A stretch of DNA of 64,000 nucleotides from positions 5,580,001 to 5,644,000 of the forward strand of contig CDRNST010000020.1 of assembly GCA_977016875.1 (NCBI GenBank), read 5' to 3'. The translations under genes were made by a program, and so were the position numbers. The notes beneath the pieces were generated by a model. The model searched no databases, was not told the origin of the DNA, and saw only the letters and a program-made list of their open reading frames with translations. Positions 15,801 to 39,899 of the stretch are shown piece by piece. The stretch comes from Pavona decussata. Taxonomy: Eukaryota. Within the stretch, counting starts at the first letter, position 1; each line of letters opens with the position of its first letter.

Positions 15801-16787
15801 GGGAAATACCGTAGGCTTCTAATGACAAGACTGTTTCGTGCAGCTCAAGTTATAATTGTTTGTGTCGAATTAAGCCCCGTCCACATGTAAACGTTTTATA
15901 ACGTTTCTTTTAACAAATAAAACCCGACAAGAAACAACCATACTTGTAAACAAAGCTTTTTGTGTTGTCGATGAGTAAATTGTGTTAAAGAATCGGTGGT
16001 AAGAGTTTCTTTACCGTTGAAAATATGTCAAGTAAGTATAAAAGGACCGAACTCCTAATACATTTACTCCATGTTGTGTGCATGTATACCAAGATGGTCG
16101 ATAAATGTTTTTACGAGAGTCTTGCTAAAACGTGTCCACAACGATACGTTTTAAAACGTTTTGTGCTAATAATTAAAAGCAATGAAGGATAGCCCTTTTT
16201 TATCTTCGAGGTGCAATCTCTTTTAACGAATCGGTGGTGATAGCTTTGGGATCGTTCAAAATGTAGTGCGTAGGTGGCTCTCACTATGTCCTTGTTTTTC
16301 TATTATCAAAGGAAGGATCTGACTTGTAATAAATTTACTCTATTTTTTGGAGTATAGTTTGACATGATGGAGTAATATGCACTAAATAACAGCATGTCAC
16401 AGGAAACAAAGCAACAACATTATTTTAAAGGTTTGCTTAAGTTAAATTCGTAGCAAAATAGTGATATCCGTGAGACACACAACATTGCTACGAAACTTTT
16501 TTTTTTTTTCGTGCCAATTTTATAAGGCTTTAATTGTCATGTTCACACAACTACCATCCCTGAAACTCGTGGCCTTACAAGTAATGTGTTGGGATCGCTT
16601 AACAGGCTCGACTAAACTGATTTGACGATGATTTTAAGATTGAGGAGAAGTCGAGAAAATAATTTTCTTTGCTGAAAAGGCCATTTACACTTGGGCAGAG
16701 ATCATCTAACGAGTCGGAAATTGGGAAAAAATATAATAGACTTTCACAAGCTAGAGTCACAGGAAAGATGCATATATTACGAAATAT

Positions 16788-19767
16788 TAGCGGAGCTCTC
16801 GCGCGCGCCGCAGGCGCGCGCAGCGGAGCCCCATAGCTAAGAGAATTTGGTAACCCGTGAATGCGAGAAATTTTGGTTTGATTATGACGTCACTTTTGTC
16901 CGTCCGTACACCGTACGTCCGTCCGTCCGTACGCAATCCCACAATGCTAATGCGCCCGTGTTTGTTTGGCGGGAAGTTGCATGGCGAGATAGTTTGGCAA
17001 GATGCGTTTACAACAGAAATGCTAAAGAACAAAAAACACAAAGACAATTTATACGTATTTGTTGGATATGTTGACAAACGTGGAAAGAAGAGAAAGAGAG
17101 AGAAAAAGAAAACAAAAAAGCGGAGACGATCAAGCAGAGTTGAACGTGGAAGAGAGCGACGGATAGCAAGTTAGAGCAGGCCGACCGGAAAAGAAAAGTA
17201 AGCTTAAGTTTAAAGAAGCCTCACATTTACCTATACCACCCGTTCGTGATTAGTTATGGTAACTTTTAGAACTCTAAAATAGCTTTACATAGACACTCTA
17301 ATCGCTTTCGATACCAGCAATATTCGAGAAGTTAATTTTGAAAAATTTGTTTCGTGGCCGTGTGTTTTTTCGTTCACAAGTTTCAAAGCTCTGAAATAAT
17401 TCTACCAAACACCAAAGAGTACGTTTCGGTATTCTCCTTTTCTTAAACTTAGAGACTAGAATTATTACTAATTAAGAGCAGAATTGACACAGTTTTTAAT
17501 ATCCAATAATTTTTCGCCGGGAGCTTACTTGCTCTCGCAAAAAAATACCATGTTTACGTGATTACGACGGCCGTTTCAACAGATCATTTGTAAACCAAAA
17601 AGGTTTCTTCCCGGAAAAAAATCGATAACTTTCCTTTATGTGACGTGTTTCAAGCTTTACACAGATATTTTAATCGTTTATTAAATTCTCGATACCATCG
17701 ATATTCGTGTAGAAATTAATTTTTGAACATTTTGTTTCGTGGCCGTGTTTTTTTTATTCGCACCTTTCGGCATTCATGTGTTTCTAAACACACATAAGTT
17801 TAAAAGCTCTGAAATAATTCTACCAAACACCAAAGACTATTTTCCCGTATTCTCCATTTGCTAACGTTTATTTAGAGACTAGAATTATTACTATAGGACC
17901 AGAATTGACACAGTTTTGGATTTCCAAACACTTTTCCCCGGGAGCTAACTTGCTCTCGCAGAAAATGTCATGTTTACGTGATTCTGACGGCCGTTTACAG
18001 ATCATTTGTAAACGAAAATGCTTTCTTCCAGGCAACAATCGATAATTTTATTCATGTTATGTGTTTAAAGCTTTGTGCAGATGCTTTTATCGTTTATTAA
18101 ATTCTCGATACCATCGATATTCGTTTAGAAATTAATTTTTGTACGATATTGTTTCGTGGCCGTGTTCTTGTCATTCACACCACACGGCTCTCATGAGTTT
18201 GTAAACAGACACAAGTTTAAAAGCTCTGAAATAATTCTACCATACACCAAAGACTATTTTCCCGTATTTTCCATTTGGTTGACGAGACTAGAATTATTAC
18301 TATAGGACCAGAATTGACACAGTTTTGAATTTCCAAACATTTTCCCCCGGGTCGGTAACTTGCTCTTACACAAAAAAATATTATCATGACGTGTAATTCG
18401 ACGGCCGTTTACAAATCATTTGTAAACGAAAATTGTTTCTTCCAGTACATGTATTTCTTTACTGAGATTGGTTCTCGCAACCGTTAAACAGAGATCTCGA
18501 CTCGTCTTGAAGAGATGGGGAAAACCACCTGAGAAAATCCGAGCTCGCACTGAAGTGCCTCGAGAAATTTTAGCTATCTGGCAGACAAAAAGATAGACGG
18601 AACTCGTACAAAGTAATTGTTTTCAGAAACATCAGATCTAGAGCCGCTTGAAAAACCGTTTCGTTTCATAAAAGATCCAGAGTTCTTGCAAGCAACAAGG
18701 CACTAGATGCGTTTGTCAAAACACTGAGGAAAGATCGTGAAATTGCTTGCGTAGTAAACCAAGAAACACTCACCCGAGAAATCGTTGAAAAGCATTTCCA
18801 GTCTTTCAGCTCGGCCCAGCTGACACAACAAATCCTTCGCAGCTTCAAAATACTGCTTGGCTTTAGCTTTTGGTGCTAGAAATTCGTAGAAAATCTTGCC
18901 GATGCGATTGGCGCACAAGACGAGTACTCAATTTTTTACTGAGCTTGATGCAAAACCCTCTCGATTTCATTCAAACTTGAACAAAGCTGCCACTTTCATT
19001 CATGCCGGTCCGCGCGAGGGAAAATGTCACAAGTTTCTTTTTTTTTTTTTGACAAATAAAGTTCAGCTTTTCTGCTATAAATCTGTGCTTTGTCATCAAT
19101 GTGTTGAATAATAAAACAATTATCCTCCTCAATCTTGCGGAATATCGCCTGATTTTAGCCAACTCGGCCTACGGCCTCGTCGGCTAAGTATCAGGCGATA
19201 CTTGTTCCGCGCAATTTCGCAGGATAACTGCTAATTGTAAGAAGAAGTAGCGAGTTGAAAGCAGTTGCATGGTCGCCATGACTGATTTCAGTTTCTCAAC
19301 TGAACAAATGTCAATCCTATCCAAGTTTTTGACACAGATAATCCGGCTTTTGCTGATTCCTGTACAGTAAGACACACGAAAACTAACGTTTAGGAATTCC
19401 CTTTCTAGCTGCAGCAGTTGATTTCCATGTATTTGTGGTACAAACAACCCGGCTTAAACAGTCGAACTCCAAAGAACTTGAAAGAAGTCGTTGTTTATGG
19501 ACACAAAATTAAGAAACCAGCGGAATGTGGAACTGGCGTGTTCACCCAGCCTCCATTGTAACAAATCAGCATTCAAAAAAAATTTGCCCTCTGCATTGCA
19601 TTGTTATTGTTTGGCCGGGCAGTTTGCTGCATATGCACTAAAAATATAACTGCAGAAAGGATGAGGAACTGGTAAGGTTATTACGTTCACACACTAAGCA
19701 AATTTTTATATTTATGCTGTGACAAAAATTGGAGCTCCGCTTTTAGGCTTGGCTAAATATATATATT
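16788..19767 (+). mobile_element. Non-autonomous Helentron-like (DINE-1/HINE-type) element, copy 1
   Basis: 5' TAGCGGAGCTC, then a GC hairpin, a conserved core and a (GTCC/GTAC)n microsatellite (~16897-16933). Central ~420-bp tandem repeats (~17280-18440). 3' GAGCTCCGCT, then a TTTAG-N6-CTAAA hairpin and ATATATT. No TSD; empty site GAAATATCACCTTG at ~20035. Confidence 0.75.
19120..19227. repeat. ~108-bp imperfect palindrome centred on GGCC-TAC-GGCC
   Basis: TTATCCT..GCGGAA.TATCGCCTGAT.TTAGCC.AC.GGCC TAC GGCC.GT.GGCTAA..ATCAGGCGATA..TTCCGC..AGGATAA. Confidence 0.85.
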
Positions 19768-22102
19768 ACCTTGTCTCTCACAAATACATCAACATTGCGA
19801 CAGGCGATCTTTTATCATGCCTTGCATCTAAGCAATGTTCTGATAAAAATCAACGATGTCTGGGATTTATTTATGAGCCTTAAAGAACGAGACGATGAAT
19901 AAAAATGGAAAACATATTGCATAAACGAATTTTCCTGTTACTGAATTCTTGGAAACGGTAAGAATTCAAAAAAACTATTTGAGTGTTGAAAACGACAGCA
20001 GAGAAAACATTCTCGAAGAAAGATGCATATATTTTGAAATATCACCTTGTCTCTCACAAATACATCAACATTGCGACAGGCGATCTTTTATCATGCCTTG
20101 CATTTAAGCAATGTTCTGATAAAAACCAACGATGTCTGGGATTTATTTATGAGCCTTAAAGAACGAAACGATGAATAAAAATGGAAAACATATTGCATAA
20201 ACGAATTTTCCTGTTACTGAATTCTTGGAAACGGTAAGAATTCAAAAAAACTATTTGAGTGTTGAAAACGAGAGCAGAGGGAACATTCTCGAAGTGAACA
20301 GCCCTTGTTTACGGGAATTAAAAAAAACGGAGTATCGTAATTTCGCTAACATTTCATTTCAATGTTACTTTGAAAGAAAAATTCTACAGGACTGGCACAC
20401 TTTATTTAATTCAGCAAGATGAATGTATTCTTAAAGCCCGTTTCGTATTCCATGCAATATCGGTATATTTTATAAAAAGCCTCTTTTTATTTGTTATAAA
20501 AAGGGGCTACTGATTGTTAGTGGCAACTACATGGAACGGATGGTGCGAAGTGAAGCATAATTTGAGTGATTGATCACTTTGTCTACTGGGAACGTTAAAT
20601 ATATTCCATGTATTAATGAGTAACAGTGTAGTCGATTCGGACAAGCAGAAAATCAGACTGTGTTAAAGAGTTGGCTGTGTTGAACGAAGGTGAGCGCTGA
20701 GGGTTTCCCCAATTTAAGGCTACTGAATTTAAATGGATTCAACATTTCCTTAAAGATTTGTTGAACCAAAAGGTTGGGGACATTTCAACATTGTTGAATG
20801 TGTGAAAAATGTTGAAGGCTTGTTGAAAGCGTGTTGAATCAAATTTCAAATTGGTTAAACCTTTCACTCAACATCGATTCAACGTTTCCTTTGTTCTCGA
20901 AAATGTCGAATGGTGCTGAGCCCGTTTGAACACTCCGTTCAGGTTTTGCCTCTAACATTTTGCCGACATCCGTTGAAAGTTTTGATGAACGAATGTTGTT
21001 CAAATGTTGAAACCGTTTAAAGGGGCCTTTATCCTTATTAGTTATAAGAGCTTAACCTGCTCTAATGAAGAGTATAGAGAAGGCTTAAGTAGTGTGACAA
21101 ATTCACGCTATTTCAAGAAGCAGAGATCTCGGCTAATTTTAGTCGAACTTCACGGATCCTGTAGGCTTGATATTTGGGGAGTTCGGTTTGTTGCTTTTTG
21201 CGAAGAGGACATGAGGTGCGTATAAGCTTGGTTTTGGAAGTCGATAAGGAATTCTCCCCGTCCTGAAACAAGTGTCTCATAGAAAGTATAGAGGTCTCGT
21301 ACTCTCGTTGTCTCGCAAAATATAGAAAAGTGCTCCACTTAGTTTTTTCTCAAATACCGCACGCCACTGGAAAATACGCCCATTTCTACTTCGCCCACTT
21401 GAGTTTGGCGAAGGAAACTAATGGCAGAAAAACCAAAAGAAAATTTTGGTTCTCAACAGAGTAGTCTTGACGTAGTAAGTTTAGAGACGTCTACTGCATT
21501 TGAAACGGGGCTCAGGGCAAATACCGTAGGCTTCTAACGACAAAACTGTTTCGGGCAGCTCACATTATAAATGCGTGTGTTGAATTAAGCCACGGCCACA
21601 TGTAAACGTTTTATAACGTTGCTTTTAACAAATAAAACCAGATAAGAAACAACCATACTTGTAAGCATAGCTCTTTTTGTCGTCGATGAGTAAATTATTT
21701 TCAAGGATCGGTGGTAAGAGTTTCTTCATCGTTGAGAATATGTTGAGTAAGTATGAAAGGACCGAACTCCTAATACGTTTACTCCATGTCGTTTGCATGT
21801 ATACCAAGGTAGTCGGTAAATGTTTTTACGAGAGTCTTGCTAAAACGTGTCCACAACGATACGTTTTAAAACGTTTTGTGCTAATAATTAAAAGCAACGA
21901 AGGATAGCCCTTTGTATCGTCGAGGTGTAATCTCTTTTAACGAATCGGTGGTGATAGCTTTGGGATCGTTCAAAATGTAGTGCGTAGGTGGCTCTCACTA
22001 GGTCCTTGTTTTCCCATTATCAAAGGAAGGACCTGACTTGTAATAAATTTACTCTATATTTGGAGTATAGTTTGACATGATAGAGTAATATGCACTAATT
22101 AA

Positions 22103-24914: not shown

Positions 24915-25632
24915 TTTAGGCTGTTGCTCTGTGAGAATTTTGTTCTCCGCGTGTTTCAGAGGCAAGTACTGTAACAAGCATTTATAAGACATATTTTGAA
25001 CCTCAAGCCTCCAGTACTAATCAATTAACCTTCTAGGTTGGCCTTGCTGAAGCAACAGAGAAGCTTAGCCTCTTTAGGCTGTGAGAATTTTGTTCTCTGG
25101 GTGTTTCAGAGGCAAGTAACTTAGAATAACAAGCATTTATAACACATGGTTATTTGTCGTTTCACAAACTAAAAATTCATCTATACGACAGCCATTTTCA
25201 TTCCATGTGCCTTTTTTAATAGCCCATAATAGTCTACATCCGGTCTGGGTCCCACGCGGTCACGAACGCCTGGGACTTCACAACAATAACTAGGAAATGT
25301 CACAACTCAGATCAGTTCGTCTCTCCAAGACATATTTTGAACCTCAAGCCTGCAGTACTAATTAATTAACCCACTAATTTGGCCTTGCTGAAGCAACAGA
25401 GAAGCTTAGCCTCTTTAGGCTGTTGCTCTGTGAGAATTTTGTTCTCCGGGTGTTTCAGAGGCAAGTACTGTAACTTAGAATAACAAGCATTTAAACATAT
25501 ATTTTGAACCCCACTCAGAAGCCTCCATCACTAATTAATTAACCCACTAGTTTGGCCTTGCTGAAGTAACAGAGAAGTTTAGCCTCTTTAGGCTGTTGCT
25601 CTGTAAGAATCTTGTTGTTCAGGTTTCTCAGA
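24915..25632. repeat. ~160-175-bp tandem repeat (~3.3 copies) with a ~185-bp insertion at ~25145-25328
   Basis: TAGGCTGT..GAGAATTTTGTTCTC..CAGAGGCAAGTA..GGCCTTGCTGAAG.AACAGAGAAG at ~24917, 25076, 25416 and 25589. Confidence 0.88.
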
Positions 25633-26592
25633 GGGAAATAAAAACCATAACTATTACAATTTTTAACCTTTGAAATCTGTCAACGAAATGTTATTTGCTC
25701 TGAACAGGTGATGGCTTTTATGTACTGTATTCTTTTATGTTTACAGATCTTTACCTTATCACCACTAAAAATTTATTAGTACAATACTGAAGCTCCCAGA
25801 GAGGCTAAGCCTTTCACAATCTAGGCTGTAACGCATATTTCTGCAAAATGTATTACCAGGTTTTGACTTGAGGCAGGACACCACCTTAGCCTTGTATTGT
25901 AGGTTGGAACCATGGGAAAAAATTATCTAGTCATATAACTAGAAATAAAAGGAAGACTTAAACATCGAAGGCCATAAATATAACTATGATTCATGTTGTT
26001 AGCTGTGGGTAAGTGATAACTTTTATTTCCTGTTTTCTTGTTTGTAGAGCTTAGCCTGAGTAAATCACATGGTTTTTGCATATATTTCATACTTTAGAAG
26101 TGCTGAAGCTGAAAATTGCACCATTGGGATGAAAATTAATTCCTCCAAAAATTTACAATACTGGTTAAAAGTGTTGCCAACCACCCCGCCCCCTCCCTCC
26201 CCCATGGCTTGTGGCCTTCAGGCTGAGGATTCTCAGGCCATGTTGATTTGAAAAATGATATTGAAGCAACTGTACCTTTGGGAAAGAAAATAATATCTTT
26301 GAACCAACATGCGATTTGTAATTATTGTAACTCATGCCTTGCCAATAAAGCCAATTATTGGCCATAAGCATCTATTTGGTAAATGTTTGACACGTGGACT
26401 TGTTATATGTCAATGTCAGTAACCGTTTCACTCTTAGAAGATATTAGCAATGGAGGCCTAATTTCTTAACTCTGGAGGAAATCTAGTGATCATAGAAACT
26501 AAAATGGTCCAAAGATATTTACAAAAATTATATTTTCTTGACTTTTTTTCCTGGCCACCAGAGGAAGTAAAAGTGTTAATATATATTATGTT

Positions 26593-27599: not shown

Positions 27600-28382
27600 G
27601 ATGTAACCCGTGCTGGTTCTCAACAATCAATACCGTTTACACATATAGAGGATATTGAGTTCACTGATCTATTTACACTCGATACTAGACAACAAATATT
27701 TGAGAAAGATAATGATAGTTTAAAGAATTTAGTGTTCAATCCTTTTAATCAAAACTCAGGTATGTCAGACTTAGAATATCATCAGTATCAAGGTATGATT
27801 GACAATATTGCGAAATGCGACTATTATCTTGAGGAGAGGTTTAAAAGCGAAATTTCGGATAGTCTATCGGATAATTCCTACTTTTCTTTATATCATCAAA
27901 ATGTACGAAGTTTGATGGGCAAAGTAGATGACTTGCAACAGGAATAAGCACATAAATTTTCAGTGATTGGTATCAGTGAAACGTGGATTAATAATGACAA
28001 CGAATCACTTATCCATTTACCAGGTTACTCATTTGTTAACATTAACAGGAAAACAAAGTCTTTTGGGGGAGTAGGGATGTTTATACCTTCAGCTTTGACT
28101 TACCGTGTTCGAAATGACTTGAACTTACAAAAAGATGATATCATAGAGAGTATTTTTATAGAGACATACCTTAAGGAAAATGATAAAATTATAACTGATA
28201 GGAACGACCACCCACGAATAATTTTAATGACTTTGAAACAGAATTGAAAACAATCCTTCACACAATGGATAAAGAAAACAAGACCTGTATATTAATGGGT
28301 GATTTTAATATTGATCTCTTAAAATATGGGAGCAATGAACATGCAAACAGATTTCTTAATCAAATGTATAGCTCGCAGTTTT
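27600..28382 (+). pseudogene. LINE ORF2 5' part (APE endonuclease), with stops and frameshifts
   Basis: FSLYHQNVRSL, IGISETWI, GGVGMFI, MGDFNIDLLK..FLNQMYSSQF, ending at the insertion point. Confidence 0.85.
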
Positions 28383-28689
28383 AGCGGAGCTCCGCACGCC
28401 GGAGGCGTGCGTACGGAGCGCCATAGCTAAGAGAATTTGGTAACCCGTGAATGCAAAAAATTTTGGTTTGGTTATGACGTCACTTTTGTCCATCCGTACG
28501 TACGACCGTACGTACGCCCGTACGCAGCCACAGGAAAACTTAGATGTGTGAAGCCGTGCTGCTACCCGCGTTTGTTTGGCGGGAAGTTGCATCGCCAACT
28601 GCTTTAATTAAGAAAACAAAAAGATCTTTTGAAGAGAACAAAATACAAAGTCAATTTATGTGACCGACAGCGGGAGAAACAGCAAGACG

Positions 28690-29950
28690 TCTAGCGGCGG
28701 GAGAAACAAATCGACTGGCAGAATCTTGAAGTGAAACCAGTTTACTCCGATCCTGCGTGACGAAACTTGGATTTTTGCTCTTTACGTGAAACGTTTCGCT
28801 CACTTGACGTTGTAAAACAAACGAAAAAAGTTAGCTATGGAATAAATAGGACTTGTTATTGTCCGGAGAGGCGAGTATATTCATGTAATTTTGTTGACAA
28901 AACTTTGCTGGTTTGCTCTCTTGCAAGATCTTGATTTCTTGCCCCTGATTTCTTGCAGTGTTAACACACCGTTTAATTTAAGCTGAAGCTGCTAAATACC
29001 GCTAACTTCAGAGGAGTCTTTTGAGATCTTTTTTTTCGGTCCATGTTGATTATTTCCCTGGCAGTTTTATTTTCTAATGGGGTGATTTTCCGCCTTTCCT
29101 TGCTTTAGAATTTGGGGTGATTTTCCGCCATTCCCAATTTCGCCGTTCCACCCTTCCAGCTTTTAGCGTCACCGGCAGCCCAACGTTCTTACTCCGATCT
29201 GGCGCGCGGAAACGTTGGATTTTTCCTCTTGAAGTGGAGCGTTTCGGTCACTTAACGTTGTAAAACAAACGAAAAAATCAGCAATGGAATAGAAGCACTG
29301 GTTATTCTCAGAAGAGGCGAGTATATTCGTGTGATTTTGTTGACAAAACTTTGCTGGTTTGCTGTTTTGCAAGATATTGATTTCTTGCAGTGTTGACACG
29401 CAGTTTATAAGCTTATAAACTATAAAATAAGTTACTGCTAACTCCAGCGTAGTCTTTTGAGGTAATTTTATTGGTCCATGTTCATTATTTCCCTTGGAGT
29501 TATATTCTTATCTCGTCCAATTTTGCCTTCCATCAGTGGGAAAAAGAGCAAGGCGACTAGCGGCGGAAACGCCACATCATGAAGAGCGGCCGAAGAGAAA
29601 TCATTTTATACTCTGTTCCGACACGACGAAACGTTGGATTTTTCCTCTTGAAGTGAAACTTTTCGCTCACTTAACGTTTTACATGTAGAACGAACGAAAA
29701 AATCAGCAATGGAACAAAAGGACTGTTTATTCGTCAAAGAGGCGAGTATATTTATATCTATTTATGTGACAGTATATTTTTGTTGACAAAACTTTGCCGT
29801 TTTGCAAGATATTGTTTTTCTTGCAGTGTTGACCATGCAACTCGTTTAACTTTTAGCTACTGCTAACTTTACAGCAGTCTTTTGAACTCGTTTTTTCGGT
29901 CCATGTTTGTTATTTTCCTTGGAGTCTTATTTTCTGATCTCATCCCATTT
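28690..29950 (+). repeat. Central ~430-bp tandem repeats (3 diverged copies) of HINE copy 2
   Basis: GAAAC(G)TTGGATTTTT..CGAAAAAA..GAGGCGAGTATATT..TTGTTGACAAAACTTTGC at ~28762, ~29209 and ~29628. Confidence 0.85.
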
Positions 29951-32900
29951 TGCTTCATTTAAGAAATTTTATTCTCAGGAAAAATAGTCAGTCAAACACG
30001 TCTCGCTACACAGTGTCGTTGACATAAACTTACAGTTTATATAAACTGACAAGTTTTTCTCGCATAAGCTTATATATTTCTAATTTTAGCATTTATTTGT
30101 GACAATCTTTACAGAGAACAAACACAAATACTTAAAATAATAGGGTATAACGGCAAAGGTTTAGACGTGGGAGTATTTTTGACTGAGCTGAAATTAAGTC
30201 TTTTAATTTAAACAATGTTAAAAGCGAGTGTAAAACTAGTGTGATTTCATTTTCATCAAAAACATGTTCCTTTGCTTCTTGTAGGTGACTGGTAATTAGC
30301 CCATTCTTTTCATTTTTCAACTTTTTCTCAGTGTGTGGAAGGGAGTGTTTTTTCAAGTAACTCAACTGAAGTGTCAAGTTCGAAAAACACAAAGAGATTT
30401 TAAAACTCCAGATAGAAGTAAGGTCTAGTAACTCTTGCCAATAATATATTGGGTCTCGGTTTCGTCGCCTCTCGACGGTTGCTTGATTTCGCAAATCTAA
30501 TTGGAGAAATGGAGATGTTTTAAATTGTCTAGGTATATTTTAACTAGCTCCTCAGAAACCACAAAGGTACACTGTTGAAGAAAAGTCTGTAATTTTTTTC
30601 ACTGTGTTCAGCTTTCCTTCATTGAAGGATTTTTTTTGCGCTCTAGGCATTAAGTCATCAACTGGTTGTGCTGTTCCATCTAAAGAAGTAGCCGGAGATT
30701 CAAAAACACTTTAATTTGTACGCGTACCTTAAGGGCATGGAATTCTGCCCATTGTGGAGCCAGCCAACCATTTTTACTTGAGGCGCATTGCTGCTCTTTC
30801 TTAACCTTGCAGTCGTCTTTGTCAAATTCCAGTTATAACTCTCCAACATCATAGTGATAGTCACAAATTTTAGCAAAATAATTATAGCCCGGGACATGTT
30901 TTTCTAGACTTTTGGATGCTTTCATGTAATCATGATTAGCCGGGTCCTGTTAACAAAAGAAGACAAAAATAATGGCTGCTCCTCCCCCTCTGTTACAAAT
31001 TCCCTTTTAAATGTAATCTGACCGAACAGGTGCATCGTCAGTGCGCACACTTTGTCATGAGCAACCGGCATTGTTGTTGTGACTCCACCATATAAATTTC
31101 TTGTTTCTAACTCATAATTTGTAAAACCTAGCATTTTGCTTGAACAAATTATGATTCAAAGCATTGCTGATCTTTTTTTCAATATGTGCTTGACGGAGTG
31201 TGGTTTTTATCCTCTTCAGCTGACACTAGATTGCATTAATTTCTTGTCTTAATCCCATATATGGGATTAGCATGGACACCAGGTGATCGGCATGATATAT
31301 TTGTAATGTAGTGATCATGGGTACATCTGCCATATAAATTCCACATATGACATAACTATAGTTATCATTCATATTATATCCGTATAACTGTTATATACAT
31401 TGTATCTCAAAATGAAAGATAATGTGGTTATTACATGGGGAATCAGTCAACCATGTTATTCCCACATTATTGATGTCTTTAATTTTGTGTCCATATAAAC
31501 ACCATACTTGGAGTATGTTGAAAGTACATGCTTGTTATAAAACCCATATTTTGATTTAATATACCCAGTTACTTTCCATATATGGACCATATATATAGCT
31601 CTCATTTTCCCCATATTATTACCATATCATAATGGTTTGGTAAGGGCCTCTGGACATGCATTGCTCTCCATTCTTTATCTTTGTGATTTTCATAGTCAGC
31701 TAGTCACAGTTATCTTCTAAATTCCTTTGTCTGTTTTTTCATGGAATCTTAGAACATATAAATTCCCATTTTATAGAATTGCCCTAGATAATGGCATCTC
31801 CAACTGTAGAATTAGTCCTTTCAGCTTCCCCCTGGCCACTGTCTTTGTGTGCTCGATGAATCCTGATGCAGTAATTAGAGTTCCAAATTCTGGACAATTT
31901 GGTATCTCTGAACCTGACTTGACAACAGCATTATCTCAAAAAATTAGTAATGACTGCATCATAAATACTGTCCATGCATGCAGTATTTATGATAAAGACC
32001 ACATTAAAAAATGTTCGTTATTGGATTTCATCTCCAAAAGAATTTAATTTTAAAAAGAATCTATTGATATCTTGTTACAATCAAATTTGTATGATGTGAG
32101 GTTATATGGGGCTAGATCGATGTAAGTATTTGCATGAAAGAATATTAGAATGATTCCTTGGTTAAGCAAACAGCTATTTCTTGATATTATGTGGTTTACA
32201 ACATAACACCACTGCATTCTCTAGAGTCATGCAGTGAATATCAGCCTTATCCTTTTAATTTTTAGTAAAGGATTTTTGAAAGTGAAATTTATTAGTTAAA
32301 TATAAGTTCGCAAATGTAATAAAATTTTAATACTCCAGAGATGCTTGTATCAGCCATTTTAGAGGAGGTTTTAAACTTAAAAAGGGTGATAGAGGGAGTG
32401 GGCAAGGTATTTTACAATGGCTTACAGGATATCTCATGAGGGGGCGCCAGAAAAAAAATATTTAGAACATCATCAGGTTGGGGAGGGGGAGGGGGGCCTT
32501 TCAAAACATGAAAGGGAAAAAATAAAAATCATCATAGGCCCTCATCTGCATAAATTATGTACCCTCCCTCTGGATTGTTTTAGAATCTGCCACTGCCTTG
32601 GCACAAAAGCCACACACAGCGGGTGTACCTTTTTTGGTAGAGTTTATAATTAAGACCTGTTGTTTAAATTGTAACAAAAAAGAAATTGATGTAAGCTTTT
32701 TATTTACCATCACAGATCCATACCTGTAGATGTGATGAAAACACTGTACGCCTCAAGAATCACTTTGTTAATGGACGTTCTTGTTGAAGCAGTTCATAAA
32801 CTTGTAAATTATGCATTCTTGTGTGAACATTTCTGTGCACTTTCCCAATTGATAGATCCAGTTGTGTATTAAATTTCTTACCTTTTCAAAAATGTTTATG

Positions 32901-34114
32901 ATGGCAGAAGCCAAATAGAATGGGCATCTCATTATTACTCAAAAGAAAATTCACTGAGTAAAGATTTGATTAGTTGACCAGGTAGGGCTATTGCTCTAGC
33001 ATGGTCAGAGTACAACAGAGATTGGCTACAGGATGCCTGGGCCTAGCTGTGTTTATAAGCAACAGAGCGCTGTACTCAATCATTCTTATAGCTATTCAAT
33101 TGAGAGGAGACAAGGTGGCTGATATTCAGGCCATGTTTAATGCAACCAAACCCTGGCTTCTGTTGATAACTGTGATTAAAGATAAAACATCAAACTTCCT
33201 ATCAGCCATCTCTTTTAATTAAAAGAAAACTTTAAAACTTGGTAGTGAGTAATGAATTATGAAATATGTACAGGTTATAATTTTTACAGTGCAATCTCAG
33301 TTATTTGAAACTCCCAATTCTTTGAACAAATATAGTTGTTTTAAATTCTCTTGGATTGCTTCAGTCAGATTTTTACCTCCTATTTTTGGAGCAAAATTAT
33401 GTTTCCCTTTGAGGTTAAAAACAATTATTGGTATTCCACTGTAGTGATTTACATATCATTATAACAAATGTTATACCCCAAGTCAATTGTTTTCTTTTAC
33501 TTACTTTTGATCACCCTATAATAACTGTTTATTTTTCATGGGTTTTGTAATGTCAGTAACCAGTGCTACAGTTTTCTACACCTTATAACATAGTCTGGTT
33601 TACCTTTTTCAGAAACAATTAAGGAAAAACACTAATATTATTTTCCTTTTCGATTCCATTCTGTATACTGGGTTATGCAAACTCTTCTTTATTTGTATAA
33701 GAACAGTTTAAACCACTGATTGTTTTGAAGAATGAAGTAATAAAATGCTTTTAATTTGCAATATTTCAAGCAAAGTATTAGTTGTTCATCATTTTGTGAA
33801 TTCAGAAGACAACTGTTGTATGCACACTCAACACTCTACCTACATTCTCTTCTACCTACCATTTTTTTTTCTCGGAAAAACCAGAGGATGAAAAGTAAAG
33901 TAAGGAATATTTTTACAGAATGCTTATTAAATGATACATGGTAGGTATCTTGCTGTGTAAAAATGAATGGGACTTCTCAGATGAGGTGCTATCCAGAACC
34001 TGGATTGAGTGATGAAGCTGCAGCAGAGTAGTGTTTAATGACTTCTTCAATTGGGATTTTGCTTTTAAGGACAGCAAGGTCTGTACCTAAATTGAGAAAC
34101 CAGAAAATAAAATC

Positions 34115-34290
34115 TGCGGTGTAAATTTTGTGGTGATGGAAACCGTTAAATTTTCTTTTCAGTATTACCTCAGTAAGGAAATGTGGTCCTTGCAAGTTAA
34201 AGAAAAACTCTTTGATCTTGGCAGGATTCAAACCCACTACCCCAGGATTTTGATCACTGATGGACCAAATGTACTCACTAGGGCAATGCA
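34115..34290 (-). mobile_element. Degenerate tRNA-derived SINE-like sequence
   Basis: Minus strand GGGGTAGTGGGTTTGAATCCTGCCAAG resembles a Pol III B box (GGTTCRANYCC); the A box is degraded. Confidence 0.35.
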
Positions 34291-34559
34291 AAATTTATTA
34301 AGTGGTTTCCTTCACACACAGAAATTTTACACTCCAGAGATAATTCTCTGATTCCCCAGTTGGATCAGCACTGTACAGCACAAAATTTCATTATCCCTTA
34401 ATTGTTGTGTTTTTTTTTTTTTACTTTACTCCAAGTGAATTCTCATGTAGCAACGTGTAAAAAAACTGCTGGGGATAACTGACCCCTTAACTGCATGATG
34501 GATTTTTTTGGTAAAGATTTTGACAGGGGCAGTTAAGGATTTAATTACCCAAGTGTTAT

Positions 34560-34751
34560 TGTGCAGTTCCAGAAAAAATCCATACCCACCCCACAGAAGG
34601 TCATCGGAAATTCCTAGGGGGAAGGGGGGTCTTAAAAGTCAAAATTTTAGAAGCAAAGTATGAAGCTAAACTGGAATTTCCTAGGGGGAGCAGGGGTGCG
34701 AAAGAAAAGACCTTCTGTGGGGGGAGTATGGATATTTTCTGGAACTGCACA
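34560..34751. mobile_element. MITE with ~26-bp TIRs
   Basis: TGTGCAGTTCCAGAAAAAATCCATAC ... GTATGGATATTTTCTGGAACTGCACA. Confidence 0.85.
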
Positions 34752-35419
34752 TTTGATTTTATGTCAAACAATTTACTAACTTTAAAAACCAGCTACAGAT
34801 GGCTAGGGACTGCAAAAACATTTTTTTTCTGTTGAATAAATTAAAGACTTACGACATTTATTGCATTCAACAATTACATCAAAAGAACGCACTCCTTACA
34901 CAGATTGGAGTCAACCTTGATTGCCATGAATGAAAGGATCTTGGGACATGTATATGGCACCCCCTGCAGATTTTGCAGGGGCAGATGATATCATCACCAA
35001 CTTGGCAAAGGAGAGAGAACCTAAGGATTGAGGTCAACAAATGCACTCTCTAATCCAGTTTTGATCATTACTAGTTTTCATATACAGCTATTTCAATTAA
35101 CGTTGTCGGATCGAAATAAAAAAGCTAAAAGACAAGACCCCAATGTTTTGTGGGATTATTTTTTATGAATAATTTCATTAAAATCATCCCTGCACGTGCA
35201 GGTCATTGTACTGCTTATTACAACCTATTGTTTTCTCCAGGCATGACTGATTTTGATGAATTATTTATTCATAAAAATCCCACGTAAACTTTCGGTCTTG
35301 TCTTTTAGCTTTATGCTTTGAACCGACAATGTTAGTTGAAATGACTGTATATAAAGTAGCAAAAGGCACAAGTGATTGTCATGTTGACTTTGCAATATCA
35401 AGAATAAGAGCCAGACAAT

Positions 35420-36047
35420 TATGCACAAGTCAACGAAAACCCTGACCCCCCCACCCCCCACCCCAGAACAAGGTGGGGATTACAAGGGAATAGTAGGGGA
35501 TTTGATACAAAATCATGCCCGAGATGGTGGGGCATTGGAAGCGTTTAGTAGATTTAGCTGCCCCGAGTGGGTAAGGATTTGTGAACAGACTGCAATGTCA
35601 AACACCTTTTTAGATAAAACTAGTGAGCAGCACGTCTGCAAACTCTTACAGTTGTAAAACGACTTGTTTTGTCCTACACGTTTCGTGTGACAAACGCACA
35701 CTTCGTCAGGGAGTTTTACAATACAACATAAGTGACCTGTATATATACCTACATAAAAGACTAAAATAAATTTTACATTACGTAAAACCGCACCTACGCT
35801 AGCGGATTTACATGTAGGAAACAGGTAAAAAGGTGCGTAAGGTGTTACATATTTTGTGCTTGACATAATTTTGGGGCCCACAGTTTTAGCTAAAACTCCA
35901 GGGGTGGGGTATTAGGTAATGCTTTGAGTTTATGAAGGATCCCGAGGGGTGGGGATATTATTCAAGATTTGAGCAAGGTTTTTTCCAGATCTCCACCTTG
36001 TCCCGGGGTGAAGGGGGGGGGGGGGGGGGTTTGTTGACTCATGCATT
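35420..36047. mobile_element. Probable MITE (C-rich left end, G-rich right end) containing a nested Penelope-like fragment
   Basis: ATGCACAAGTCAAC ... GTTGACTCATGCAT inverted ends. Confidence 0.5.
35653..35720 (-). ncRNA. Minimal type I hammerhead ribozyme (Penelope-like element/retrozyme type)
   Basis: Minus strand: TGTAAAAC-TCC-CTGACGA-A-GTGTG-cgtttgt-CACAC-GAA-AC-gt-GT-A-GGA-caaaacaagtc-GTTTTACA. It has the CUGANGA/GAAA core, a 5-bp stem II, a 2-bp stem III with GUA cleavage triplet, and a bulged 3+8-bp stem I. Confidence 0.72.
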
Positions 36048-36594
36048 ACTGCTGTGGTTTCCCTGAACAAAACAGTGTCACTTTGCACTCTCAAAACAAA
36101 AGGATTAATATGATTGACAGGAAGTTATGAAAGGTTCATGTTTTTCCTATCGCTTCCAAAACGAATGGGAAAATTATACTGCATTCTTAGATTAAGAGTT
36201 GAGAGCAAGAAAGACATCTTGACTCTCTTAAATCAATATCAAAGGCATGGAACTGAGCACCTAATTCGAGTTTACACATACAAAAACAAAAAAAAAAAAA
36301 ACCAACTTCATGTGTACAAGAATAGCTATCAACCTGGGAAAAACAAATTTAAAAAAAATGAGCTTTTTAATCTAATTTATTGAATTAATCAGCTACAAGT
36401 ACAGTATTAGAAAATAGAAAAATGACCCAAAGCTAACTTGACTTGAAATATTTCTCCTGTATTCAAAGATCTCCAATGTGCATCTCCCTCAAATAGAACC
36501 TGAACATCAAAAAAAAAAAAAAAAATCACTCAATTTCAGTAGAAAACGATGAAATCTAAAATATTTTGTAAATCTCCATTAACGACTCGATTTT

Positions 36595-37184
36595 CAATTC
36601 TCGGTTTTCACTGTCACGCCATTGAAAAAAAAATCGAAACCATTCCATGAATGAAGTCAAGAAATTGACATGGTATAGAGGATAAATAAATAAGGCATCT
36701 GTCCCAGTGTCAGGTCTGTGCGGCATTCCGTACTCGAGTTATTTGAGAAAATGTTCCACATAAATTTATAGAGCTTAGTATGGAGACGTCATGTTTGTGT
36801 CCCTCTGAGGGGCACAAACATGGCGGCCGGAAATCCGAAAAAACATCTGGAGTTCACTTTTGCCAGAAAAGAGGTTTGTTTGCCCTTGTGAATTTTCGAA
36901 TGTTTAGATTAACAGTTTTCCTCAAACTTAAATTGTTTAGAATGATGAGAGTCATTTTTAAGATACGGAAAAACTCTGTCACGGCCGTCCTCCTTATGTC
37001 ACGCACGATGGAAACTCGGAAATTGAAACTGTTCTATTTTCAAAAGGAAGCACGACATCGAGCTAAGAAATTGTGAACAGACATATTTTTAGGTAATCTT
37101 TCCTTGAATGAAGGTAAAAATTTTTGCAGGCCTCCCAGTTTTGAATTCCAGAATTTGGTGACGTCACGTGAAAACCGAGAATTG
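36595..37184. mobile_element. MITE with 17-bp perfect TIRs
   Basis: CAATTCTCGGTTTTCAC ... GTGAAAACCGAGAATTG. Confidence 0.82.
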
Positions 37185-37959
37185 GCCCGTAGTTTGAAAC
37201 AATCTCGTAGTATTGTGCATTTTATGTTACCGACCATATCAATTCATATAACAACACTGGCCTACTATTGTCCTTATTAGCTTGCCATTTTAACATTATC
37301 TTGATTAAAGATCAAAGATTTTTTTAGCAAATTGCTCTTCCTTCAGAAAAAAAAAACATCAAACAGTACAAAGATGTGCATCCATACATAAAGATTTGAA
37401 GTTATCTTACCTCCTTGATTGACAGAGCCGTCGGACCTTTTGCCTTCCACCGACACAGCAAAACCCCATCTACTTTTGACATTTATCAAACTAAAAATTT
37501 TCCTTCAGCCCAACAAATTTGCTGTAGAAAGGAACATTTTTCACACAGTCACGCAGGAAAAATAACATGAAGAAAACTTCTTCCTCTTCTTCAACTTAGC
37601 AAAGAGCCAAAGACAACTAAATTCGCCCCTTCCGCCGCCATTTTTGACGCGCTGGGGCTCTGGGGACGAGACTGGGGCACAAGCGCAAAGATCACCTCCT
37701 CCTTACCGCGGTGAAAGGAAAATTAAGGAAAAAATGCCTTCTGTTACAACAAAGCAGCATTACATAATTTTGCCTTCTGTATGACATTATTATTGTTATT
37801 GTCGATGGGAAGTTTGCTTCATATGCACTAAAAATATATATAACTGCAGAAAGAATGAGAAACTGGTAAGGTTACTACGCTCATACGAAAAGCAGATTTC
37901 TATAAATGCTATGAAAAAAATTGGAGCTCCGCTTTTAGGCTTGGCTAAATATATATATT

Positions 37960-39899
37960 ATCCTGTCATTATCAGACCAACAAGAATAACAACTAACTCA
38001 GCGACAATAATTGATAACATATTTATTAATAACATTTACTTAGACTGCTCAAGTGGTATTTTGATTAATGACCTCTTAGATCACTTACCTGTTTTTCAAA
38101 TATTACCGAATTTAAATATACAAAAACCAAAAAAGAATTCTTTCAAGAGGAGAGAATTAACCAAGGCAAACATAGATAAGTTGCGTAACGAAATACAAAA
38201 TATAAGCTGGGAATACCTTAAGACAATCAATGATGTTAACATGTTCAATGATTATTTTGTTAACGTTGGACCGAATCTTGATAAGAAGATAACAACCAAT
38301 ACTAATTTATCATTCAAAGCGGATTACTTGAAGGAAAGTTTTATGGATTCGATGCTGTTATCACCTGTTTGTGAACAGGAAATTAAGAGAGAATTAGAAA
38401 ATCTTGACCCATCAAAAACCTGCGGACATGATAATATCATGCCCCGGGTAGCTAAACTATTAGCATCAGAACTAAGTGTACCGTTATCATATATTATAAA
38501 TCTCACTTTTACTACTGGTAAGATACTTGTAGACTTAAAAACCTCGATTATTATTCCAGTATACAAAACAGGAGACAAACGTGAATTCACAAACTACAGA
38601 CCTATGTCTTTGATACCTTGTTTTTCTAAAATATTAGAGAAAATGATGTACAAACGATTATTGAATTACGTAAACAAAATATGTGTACTCAGTAGTCACC
38701 AATATGGATTCAGGAAAAATCTCTCAGCAAATTTTGCGCTTATCGACCTCATAGATAGAATTACAACTGCTGTAGATAACAAAGAATTTGTAGCTGGGGT
38801 TTTTCTAGATCTGTCTAAAGCTTTTGATACTGTAAATCATGACTTGCTACTTCAAAAGTTAGAATTTTATGGTATTAGAGGGATTGCACTGGACTGGTTT
38901 AAGAGTTATATAACCAAGAGATATCAGTGCGTTAATTATAACAACGAACTATCGGACAAAAAAGAAATAACATGTGGAGTTCCTCAAGGATCTGTCCTGG
39001 GTCCACTACTGTTTTTAATTTACATTAACGATATCTGTAATAGTTCGAACCTATTATCTTTCATTCTTTTTGCAGATGATACTAATTTGTTAATGTCTCA
39101 TAAAAATCGGGATACACTGATAGCCAAAATAAACTAAGAATTAGAAAAAGTAACCATTTGGCTACAATTAAACAAATTATCACTCAATCTCACAAAAACT
39201 AACTTTATGCTATTTAAATCATCAAGGAAGAAAATAGATCATGAATTAAGAATTAGGGTAGAAGACCATTGTATTACTCAAGTACAACATACAAAATTTC
39301 TTGGAACAATAATTGATGAACAGTTGAAATGGACTGAACACATCAATTATGTAGCAAACAAAATATCAAGATTTACAGGAATATTATGTAAGGCAAGGCA
39401 TTATATAACTAAATCTTTGCTGAAATCAATTTATTATGCTTTAATCTATCCCTATATTTATTATGGAAATATTGTTTGGGCTAATGCATACCCATCCCAT
39501 CTAAACAGGATATATAAACTACAAAAGAAAATTGTACGGATAATAACTTTCAAACAATACAATCATAGCTCGAAACCATTATTTGATGAGTTGCAGATAC
39601 TGAATGTATATCAAATTAATTATAACTCTATTGCCATATCAACAAGACAATTCATAAATAATCAATTACCTACTTCTTTGAAGAACATTTTCAGGACTAA
39701 TGAAGATGTGCATAATTATAATACACGATCAACCAAAAAATTACACAAGCCTTTAATCAAAACAAATATAAGAAAATTTAGTATAAGCTATAAGGGAGTA
39801 GATATATTTAATAACTTGCCAAGTGATCTTAAAAAAACCAGATGTCAATCAACTTTTAAACGAAAACTAAAAAACTTTATCCTTACAAATCAAATATAG
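37960..39899 (+). pseudogene. LINE ORF2 3' part (end of EN, RT, C-terminus); apparent internal deletion and in-frame TAA at 39135-39137
   Basis: PTRIT..IDNIF..DHLPVF, NYRPMSL, QYGFRK, DLSKAFDTV, GVPQGS, FADD. Reading continues in frame after the stop to HNYNTR..FKRKLK. Confidence 0.9.

Follow-up and report, generated by a model that had tools for sequence, protein, structure and literature searches.

A 9.6-kb insertion that splits a LINE in the stony coral Pavona decussata is most probably a long non-autonomous Helentron-type transposon

Here we describe a 9.6-kb insertion in the genome of the stony coral Pavona decussata, located within a stretch of 64,000 nucleotides from the forward strand of contig CDRNST010000020.1 (positions 5,580,001 to 5,644,000; NCBI GenBank assembly GCA_977016875.1). 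We refer to this whole stretch as the window and number positions from its first letter. The interval 28382–37958 is a precise insertion by which host bases were neither gained nor lost on balance. Most probably, it is one copy, placed there by transposition, of a HINE that is long and encodes no protein, HINEs being non-autonomous rolling-circle transposons of the Helentron type (HLE2). This copy is 9,577 bp long, lies on the plus strand and belongs to the longer of two subfamilies (A); its delimitation comes from an empty-site alignment and from 14 other loci at which this interior recurs, enclosed by these ends. An earlier note, drawn up from the letters of the window alone, had presented the interval as a cargo-laden, gene-capturing element and as a candidate for an undescribed system.

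The host of the insertion is a long interspersed nuclear element (LINE) whose second open reading frame (ORF2) is interrupted. On the left, the frame ends with ...NQMYSSQF (CAG TTT at 28376–28381), and it is picked up in phase at 37959 with TAT CCT (YPVIIRPTR...). The left open-frame piece (28202–28381, plus strand; ...GDFN...NQMYSSQF) matches PF14529 (endonuclease-reverse transcriptase, E = 3.7e-06), and the right piece (37959–39137, plus strand) comprises the end of the endonuclease domain with its (S/L)DH motif, followed by a reverse transcriptase (PF00078, E = 4.9e-30). These matches on both sides identify the host as a LINE ORF2 split within its endonuclease domain. Up to the junction, the left flank reads ...GDFNIDLLKYGSNEHANRFLNQMYSSQF, and the unfilled site at this locus would read CAGTTTTATCC. 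Searching the same genome (602 Mb, 1,180 contigs) with the left flank yielded two close paralogues that reach the junction, and 400 bp around each were compared (C11:1165123-1165523 and C142:111339-111739). Both hold an uninterrupted CGCAGTTTTATCCTGTC, with the left half continuous with the sequence from 37959 onward. When 100 nt and 200 nt of window flank were joined, for alignment to these paralogues only, leaving out 28382–37958, the resulting sequence aligned without a single gap (identities 296/300 and 289/300). The 9,577 bp in question were thus inserted precisely. The earlier note had likewise recognized one insertion in a LINE, and this stands; its boundaries (28383–37959) are shifted by one base relative to ours, although the two readings are equally possible.

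Both ends of the element are built from a series of modules. It starts with TA-GCGGAGCTCCGC and finishes with GGAGCTCCGC-T-TTTAG-gcttgg-CTAAA-(TA)n-T (end sequences: 5′ TAGCGGAGCTCCGC..., 3′ ...GGCTAAATATATAT). The 5′ subterminal inverted repeat (subTIR), GCGGAGCTCCGC, is a palindromic 12-mer located 2 nt from the 5′ terminus (28384–28395, plus strand), and its inverted copy, GGAGCTCCGC, begins 36 nt from the 3′ terminus (37923–37932, plus strand). Overlapping the 5′ subTIR, a hairpin (28394–28410) and an inverted repeat complementary to the subTIR occupy 28394–28422 on the plus strand (stem GCACGCC/GGCGTGC, then CGGAGC), with a DNA folding energy of −15.9 kcal/mol (z −3.4). Further inside lies a short microsatellite detected with TRF (28494–28524, plus strand), which consists of 2.6 copies of the 12-nt unit CCGTACGTACGA in a GTCC/GTAC-rich stretch, and beyond it three central tandem repeat units of ~430–447 bp that are 76–80% alike (28742–29956, plus strand). 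At the other end, the palindrome TTTAG-gcttgg-CTAAA (37934–37949) is followed by a (TA)n tail that forms the 3′ terminus (37934–37958 in total, plus strand). The 5-bp stem of this palindrome is weak as DNA and not significant alone (z +1.3); one other copy (L004) carries the variant TTTAGCC/GGCTAAA. A 22-nt 3′ terminal motif has exactly two matches in the window, both at predicted 3′ ends, where none would be expected by chance, and a 32-nt 3′ motif returned ~795 matches in the genome and 0 in a reversed control. The combination of subTIRs, 5′ hairpin, microsatellite, central repeats, 3′ palindrome, and TA tail corresponds to the end architecture of HINEs (PMC4067079, PMC7492417), in agreement with the Helentron-type assignment made earlier from the letters of the window.

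The second 3′ end in the window belongs to a sibling HINE of 2,979 bp (16788–19766, plus strand), in which the same end modules enclose unrelated central repeats. As the earlier note had pointed out, the two elements have the same ends: the 5′ similarity extends over ~145 nt (86% identity) and another 28 nt, and the 3′ similarity over ~212 nt (82%). Their interiors are unrelated. The sibling keeps the 5′ hairpin with a different stem sequence (GCGCGCGCC/GGCGCGCGC), and its central repeats, ~417-bp units at 17375–18351, show no similarity to the ~430-bp units of the 9.6-kb element. An empty site is available here as well: the segment 14053–16347 is a paralogue of 16502–16787 plus 19768–22061, that is, of the flanks of the 3-kb element, and 14338/14339 thus marks the unfilled position. 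The host of this sibling is itself a duplicated segment of ~2.3 kb (88–93% identity), which is how an empty site comes to lie within the window. The subTIR arrangement, 2 nt from the 5′ end and with an inverted copy inside the 3′ end, is the same in the sibling and in all copies that we fetched from the genome.

These copies were obtained by a genome search with the whole interval, which returned many long matches; 15 were fetched with their flanks, and our DNA searches generally score 20–40 candidates. The earlier note had proposed looking for the same interior between the same ends in different surroundings, and 14 of the 15 fetched loci turned out to be of this kind, being colinear with the window copy either end to end or up to a truncation and having mutually unrelated flanks. 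Module polarity is the same in all copies. With the segment 31647–32886 as query, 247 candidate loci were found; among the 40 that were scored, at least 27 are full-length at 90–98% identity and six match at 76–79%. One of the divergent copies, an old one on contig C7 (L024), shares the 3′ terminus and matches the window copy colinearly at 77–88%, including the central tandem repeats. Since colinearity of the interior extends to this old copy at ~80% and to at least 27 loci of younger age, the interior is an old and stable part of the family and not cargo of the window copy. Members of subfamily A measure ~9.0 kb and are 94–97% identical to the window copy, with two of them (L001 and L013) 99% identical to each other. 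Subfamily B is shorter (~7.55 kb), 93% identical to the window copy, and 98–99% identical among its own members. From these high identities within A and B we infer that both lineages were recently active.

Two segments of the non-coding family body lie on the plus strand, and further stretches of it are located at 36045–36599 and 37180–37747. The first segment (29957–31066) is colinear between the two subfamilies and, in part, with the old copy, and it has no Pfam hit; the second (31647–34560) contains 31647–32886, for which many full-length genomic matches exist, as well as 32887–33368. The latter piece is missing from subfamily B and kept in the old copy, and its absence from subfamily B is therefore a deletion. 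Overall, nested transposons account for ~2.2 kb of the element, and the other ~7.3 kb consist of end modules, tandem repeats, and ~5 kb of unique non-coding sequence. Two further origins of the observed structure were considered and rejected. Segmental duplication does not explain the fetched copies, as similarity between them ends at the termini and the very next base already belongs to differing flanks, and a composite of two HINEs is contradicted by the lack of internal termini. Segmental duplications that contain HINE copies may occur elsewhere in the genome: several pairs of equally oriented HINE 3′ ends with identical 5-nt flanks are separated by 18–86 kb of a single contig (e.g., C51:2116578/2135019, C24:2435314/2453935, and C20:4204756/4280338) and resemble such duplications. 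At one fetched copy (L006, C56:2701511-2710093), the 5′ and 3′ flanks share repeats of 82–100 nt at 86–93% identity, which places this copy within a host tandem repeat.

Five nested transposons interrupt the body, one 5′-truncated repeat and four MITEs (miniature inverted-repeat transposable elements) bounded by terminal inverted repeats (TIRs) and target-site duplications (TSDs). The presence of tandem repeats and several MITEs, already remarked upon in the earlier note, is thereby borne out. The first of the five (31067–31646, plus strand; 580 bp) occurs in subfamily A only and is absent at the same boundaries from subfamily B and the old copy. It corresponds to the 3′-terminal 573–578 bp of a longer repeat, dispersed and measuring at least 1.3 kb, that is present on contigs C123, C120, and C351 and ends exactly at the equivalent of 31646; it is therefore a nested, 5′-truncated copy of this longer repeat. 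Among the scored genome matches, the only paralogues found for this piece outside the element are those of the dispersed repeat and not of a host gene. The three parent loci (L031–L033: C123:147200-149300, C120:1755200-1757300, and C351:18700-20800) are 94–97% alike and lack a long ORF, and the 5′ truncation is reminiscent of a retroelement.

Among the four MITEs, a 190-bp element with 43-bp TIRs (GTGCAGTTCC...) and the TSD ATT (34561–34750) is absent from subfamily B and from one further copy (L014); its word depth in coral sequencing runs is very high. A 263-bp palindromic MITE (35085–35347; TIR CAGYYATTTCAA, TSD TA) is accompanied by a joint from 35082 to 35348 in run X16. The third is a TIR element of ~623 bp (35422–36044) flanked by ATTA, with TIRs of ~60 bp that are 78% alike. 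It is absent from the old copy, and contigs of the coral runs X16, X18, and X1 skip 35418/35421–36044. The fourth, a TIR element of 580 bp (36600–37179; CTCGGTTTTCAC, TSD AATT), is the only one of the five that is private to the window copy. All 15 other copies compared have a clean empty site at this position, and the element must therefore have arrived after the HINE had inserted here, which bears out the suggestion that some nested MITEs postdate the insertion.

The ~623-bp MITE contains a hammerhead-like motif on the minus strand (35654–35719), with CUGACGA, helix II, GAAAC, and GUC in the expected places, which we regard as a candidate only. An extra A follows A9, before helix II, and helix III comprises just 2 bp. 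Comparison with the Rfam hammerhead models gave no match at E ≤ 1 in a 12.5-kb search or at E ≤ 10 in a 401-nt search, and the predicted RNA fold is no better than those of shuffled sequences (z −1.2). The earlier description of this motif as a ribozyme is thus not upheld. Bins around the motif have a word depth of ~4–5 times that of the HINE body in coral runs, from which it follows that the carrier element has copies outside the HINE.

No coding capacity was detected in the element. A Pfam scan of its 20 longest open frames gave no hit above the cut-off, no frame longer than 60 amino acids (aa) stays open across the 16 copies compared, and tblastn with four Helitron, Helentron, and RPA proteins of this genome against the window copy returned nothing at E ≤ 1. 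Neither a conserved open frame nor a Rep/helicase remnant was thus detected, consistent with its earlier classification as non-autonomous. These results also bear on the gene-capture explanation favored by the earlier note, according to which the ~9 kb between the ends are heterogeneous host DNA with exon fragments, taken up by end bypass or filler capture. Helentrons have been reported to take up gene fragments (PMC4067079), only ~210 bp per end are common to the 9.6-kb element and its 3-kb sibling, and ~5 kb of the interior are neither tandem repeat nor TIR-bounded transposon. However, the frames contain no Pfam domain and none is conserved across copies, so that neither exon-like blocks nor any other protein-coding fragment could be recognized. 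The interior is colinear both in the old copy and in the younger loci, and nested transposons or a deletion account for the pieces by which the subfamilies differ. Likewise, no donor locus, which the earlier note had suggested locating, was found among the scored genome matches (20–40 candidates, saturated by copies of the element). We consider gene capture by this element unlikely, and the term cargo is not supported for what is the family's own body.

The sequences flanking the copies raise a different question. Of 44 exact 5′ ends, 43 have a T in front of AGCGG, and the base preceding this T is mostly A. At the 3′ side, an A follows ...ATATT in 95 of the 100 3′ ends listed out of ~795. Three target readings fit these data equally well, namely insertion between T and A (T^A) without duplication, insertion at W^TA, and duplication of TA. 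The rule reported for HLE2, insertion between T and T (PMC11417382), describes a minority of copies only, and the 9.6-kb element itself sits between a left-hand T and a right-hand A. As nearly all copies are flanked by T...A, the absence of a TSD is not separable by sequence from a TA duplication. The earlier statement that there is no TSD is therefore right insofar as the host bases show no net change, whereas the T...A flanks fit a TA duplication equally well.

A TA duplication is what a large non-autonomous cut-and-paste element of the Tc1/mariner type would leave behind, and the flanks at both sides look as such a duplication would. DINE-like elements have been filed as MITEs on similar grounds (PMC4067079). 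The termini of the coral element, however, are not inverted repeats of each other: the 5′ end is GCGGAGCTCC..., and the extreme 3′ end is a TA run, with the inverted copy located 27 nt inside. For the same reason, a MITE of the Tc1/mariner type was rejected despite the TA flanks. The asymmetric layout, with a 5′ hairpin and microsatellite, central repeats, and a 3′ palindrome, is that of a HINE, and the modules have identical polarity in every copy. A cut-and-paste origin thus appears very improbable to us.

Least plausible is that the interval is not one unit but a short HINE hit by a separate TIR/TSD-bounded transposon, as the earlier note had allowed for, or an assembly join of unrelated repeats. 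The element is repeat-rich, and publicly available unitigs are interrupted at 37958 and at MITE borders, but no TIR/TSD pair encloses the whole interior, internal termini are lacking, and the order of segments is repeated on 14 further contigs in different surroundings, a recurrence that would not result from an artefact of assembly.

We also searched the genome for an autonomous partner. PF14214 (Helitron_like_N) returned 86 hits, among which intact ORFs reach 2,722 aa. From these 86 Rep hits, we sampled seven Rep-encoding groups (C334, C25, C49, C93, C88, C282, and C67) with 3–4 kb of flank each. Within 3–4 kb of their ORFs, all seven lacked both the subTIR and the 3′ motif and showed no nucleotide similarity to our element. 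On C25 (L020+L021, G000:C25:2105500-2120500), an intact 2,547-aa Helentron ORF combines Helitron_like_N, PIF1, and a C-terminal Exo_endo_phos domain. A frameshifted Helentron on C67 (L034+L035, G000:C67:1739500-1754500) shares 44% identity with the Helentron protein of C25 and is accompanied by an RPA-like ORF, and C49 (L022+L023, G000:C49:2185000-2200000) holds a Helitron-like element with an OB-fold ORF. In both the C49 and C67 copies, this downstream ORF is separate, ~270–380 aa long, and predicted to adopt an Ssb-like OB fold (RPA-like).

Taken together, the data show the following history for the long HINE in the window. Its inherited non-coding body comprises the 5′ end module, the microsatellite, ~1.2 kb of central tandem repeats, and ~5 kb of unique sequence. 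In the lineage of this copy, four nested transposons enlarged this body and were then copied along at each later transposition. A unit of ~9.0 kb finally entered the endonuclease-coding part of the LINE and gained the 580-bp TIR element at 36600–37179 afterwards. Mobilization presumably occurred in trans, by a Helentron Rep/helicase, possibly with endonuclease, that would recognize the palindromic subterminal repeats and the terminal hairpins.

Several points weigh against this interpretation. No autonomous element with HINE termini is found among the seven sampled Rep-encoding groups. Judged by the flanking bases, the copies sit between T and A, not between T and T as reported for HLE2, and a TA target-site duplication may also account for them. 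The unique body of ~5 kb may be an ancient capture of non-coding host DNA, which the 20–40 scored genome matches, saturated by copies of the element, would not reveal. Finally, in public runs, which are coral or coral-metagenome Logan unitigs of 100–360 nt compared with 32600–38500, the unitigs terminate precisely at 37958 and at the borders of the MITEs, and none spans the junction between LINE and HINE. One X1 unitig continues leftward into sequence unlike the window, as an empty LINE copy would give.

A more far-reaching combination, by which the family would be an unusual HINE lineage, would be that the ~5-kb body is kept at full length over a long evolution, between copies of ~80% and 99% identity, for a role in cis or as RNA, that T^A is the true target, and that the element serves as a vehicle co-amplifying MITEs, one of them with a hammerhead-like motif. 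As a joint proposition, this seems rather unlikely to us, if slightly less so than gene capture. A T^A target, if true, would imply either a Helentron transposase of altered specificity or cross-mobilization by a partner with unrelated ends.

In conclusion, the preferred reading places the coral HINE in a class of transposons that is already described, where it stands out by size but is otherwise ordinary. It does not reveal a new transposition system, and there is no evidence of host-gene shuffling here. The earlier view of an undescribed system is not supported, as HINEs, cnidarian Helentrons, and gene capture by Helentrons have all been described (PMC4067079, PMC7492417, PMC11417382). What the locus offers is a stony-coral HINE delimited cleanly and to the nucleotide, empty sites for both this copy and its sibling, and an illustration of how a non-autonomous rolling-circle element may grow from ~7 kb to 9.6 kb by gathering other transposons and then spread them. 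Its length, the T...A flanks, the partner not found in the sampled groups, and the co-amplification of nested MITEs are points of minor interest. For the repeat annotation of coral genomes, it indicates that such composites will be mis-split by automatic tools. As an aside on the surroundings, the region upstream of the LINE (24915–25647) contains several families of short direct repeats (61–122 nt, 70–98% identity) with irregular spacing.

In the open literature searched, we found no description of a coral HINE, and the closest comparisons come from other animals. Canonical Helitrons (HLE1) resemble the element in that they show no demonstrable duplication, have a hairpin near the 3′ end, and include long non-autonomous derivatives that can carry foreign DNA. 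In contrast to them, the coral element has no 5′ TC or 3′ CTRR and possesses subterminal inverted repeats and a 3′ TA run. An assignment to HLE1 (5′ TC, 3′ CTRR, hairpin ~11 nt from the 3′ end, A/T target) was rejected in view of the ends TAGCGG... and ...ATATATAT(T). Autonomous Helentrons of the HLE2 group (Nematostella Helentron, PMC4067079; HELIANO survey, PMC11417382) are the presumed source of transposase, and intact elements with Rep, PIF1, and AP-endonuclease exist in this genome; the studied element, however, encodes nothing, and the sampled Helentrons lack its termini.

The resemblance is far more detailed for the HINEs themselves, which were defined in mites, mosquitoes, and Drosophila (PMC4067079) and in oysters (PMC7492417). 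The subterminal inverted repeats of HINEs measure ~11–13 bp, with a distance of 2–4 nt to the 5′ terminus and of tens of nt to the 3′ terminus. Like the HINEs/DINE-1 of Thomas et al. 2014 (PMC4067079), the coral family is non-coding and carries a 12-nt subTIR, palindromic as in mite and Culex families, at a distance of 2 nt from one terminus (5′) and of a few tens of nt from the other (3′). It also combines a 5′ inverted repeat adjoining the subTIR with a microsatellite, tandem repeats in the center, and a 3′ palindrome of short length. AT/T-rich targets without a demonstrable TSD and hundreds of copies are further shared features. It differs in its size of 7.5–9.6 kb, the ~5-kb unique non-coding body, flanks of T...A instead of T...T, and the lack of an end-sharing autonomous partner among the seven sampled groups. 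The Pacific oyster's Cg_HINE (Vojvoda Zeljko et al. 2020, PMC7492417) has the same left flank of subTIR, inverted repeat, and GTCC/GTCY microsatellite and the same right flank of subTIR and palindrome. In the oyster, too, similar flanks enclose unrelated satellite-like central repeats, as in the 9.6-kb and 3-kb copies described here, and its authors likewise could not tie autonomous Helentrons to HINEs. Whereas the oyster elements consist essentially of flanks and tandem repeats, the coral family adds to this plan a long unique body and nested transposons that are amplified along with it.

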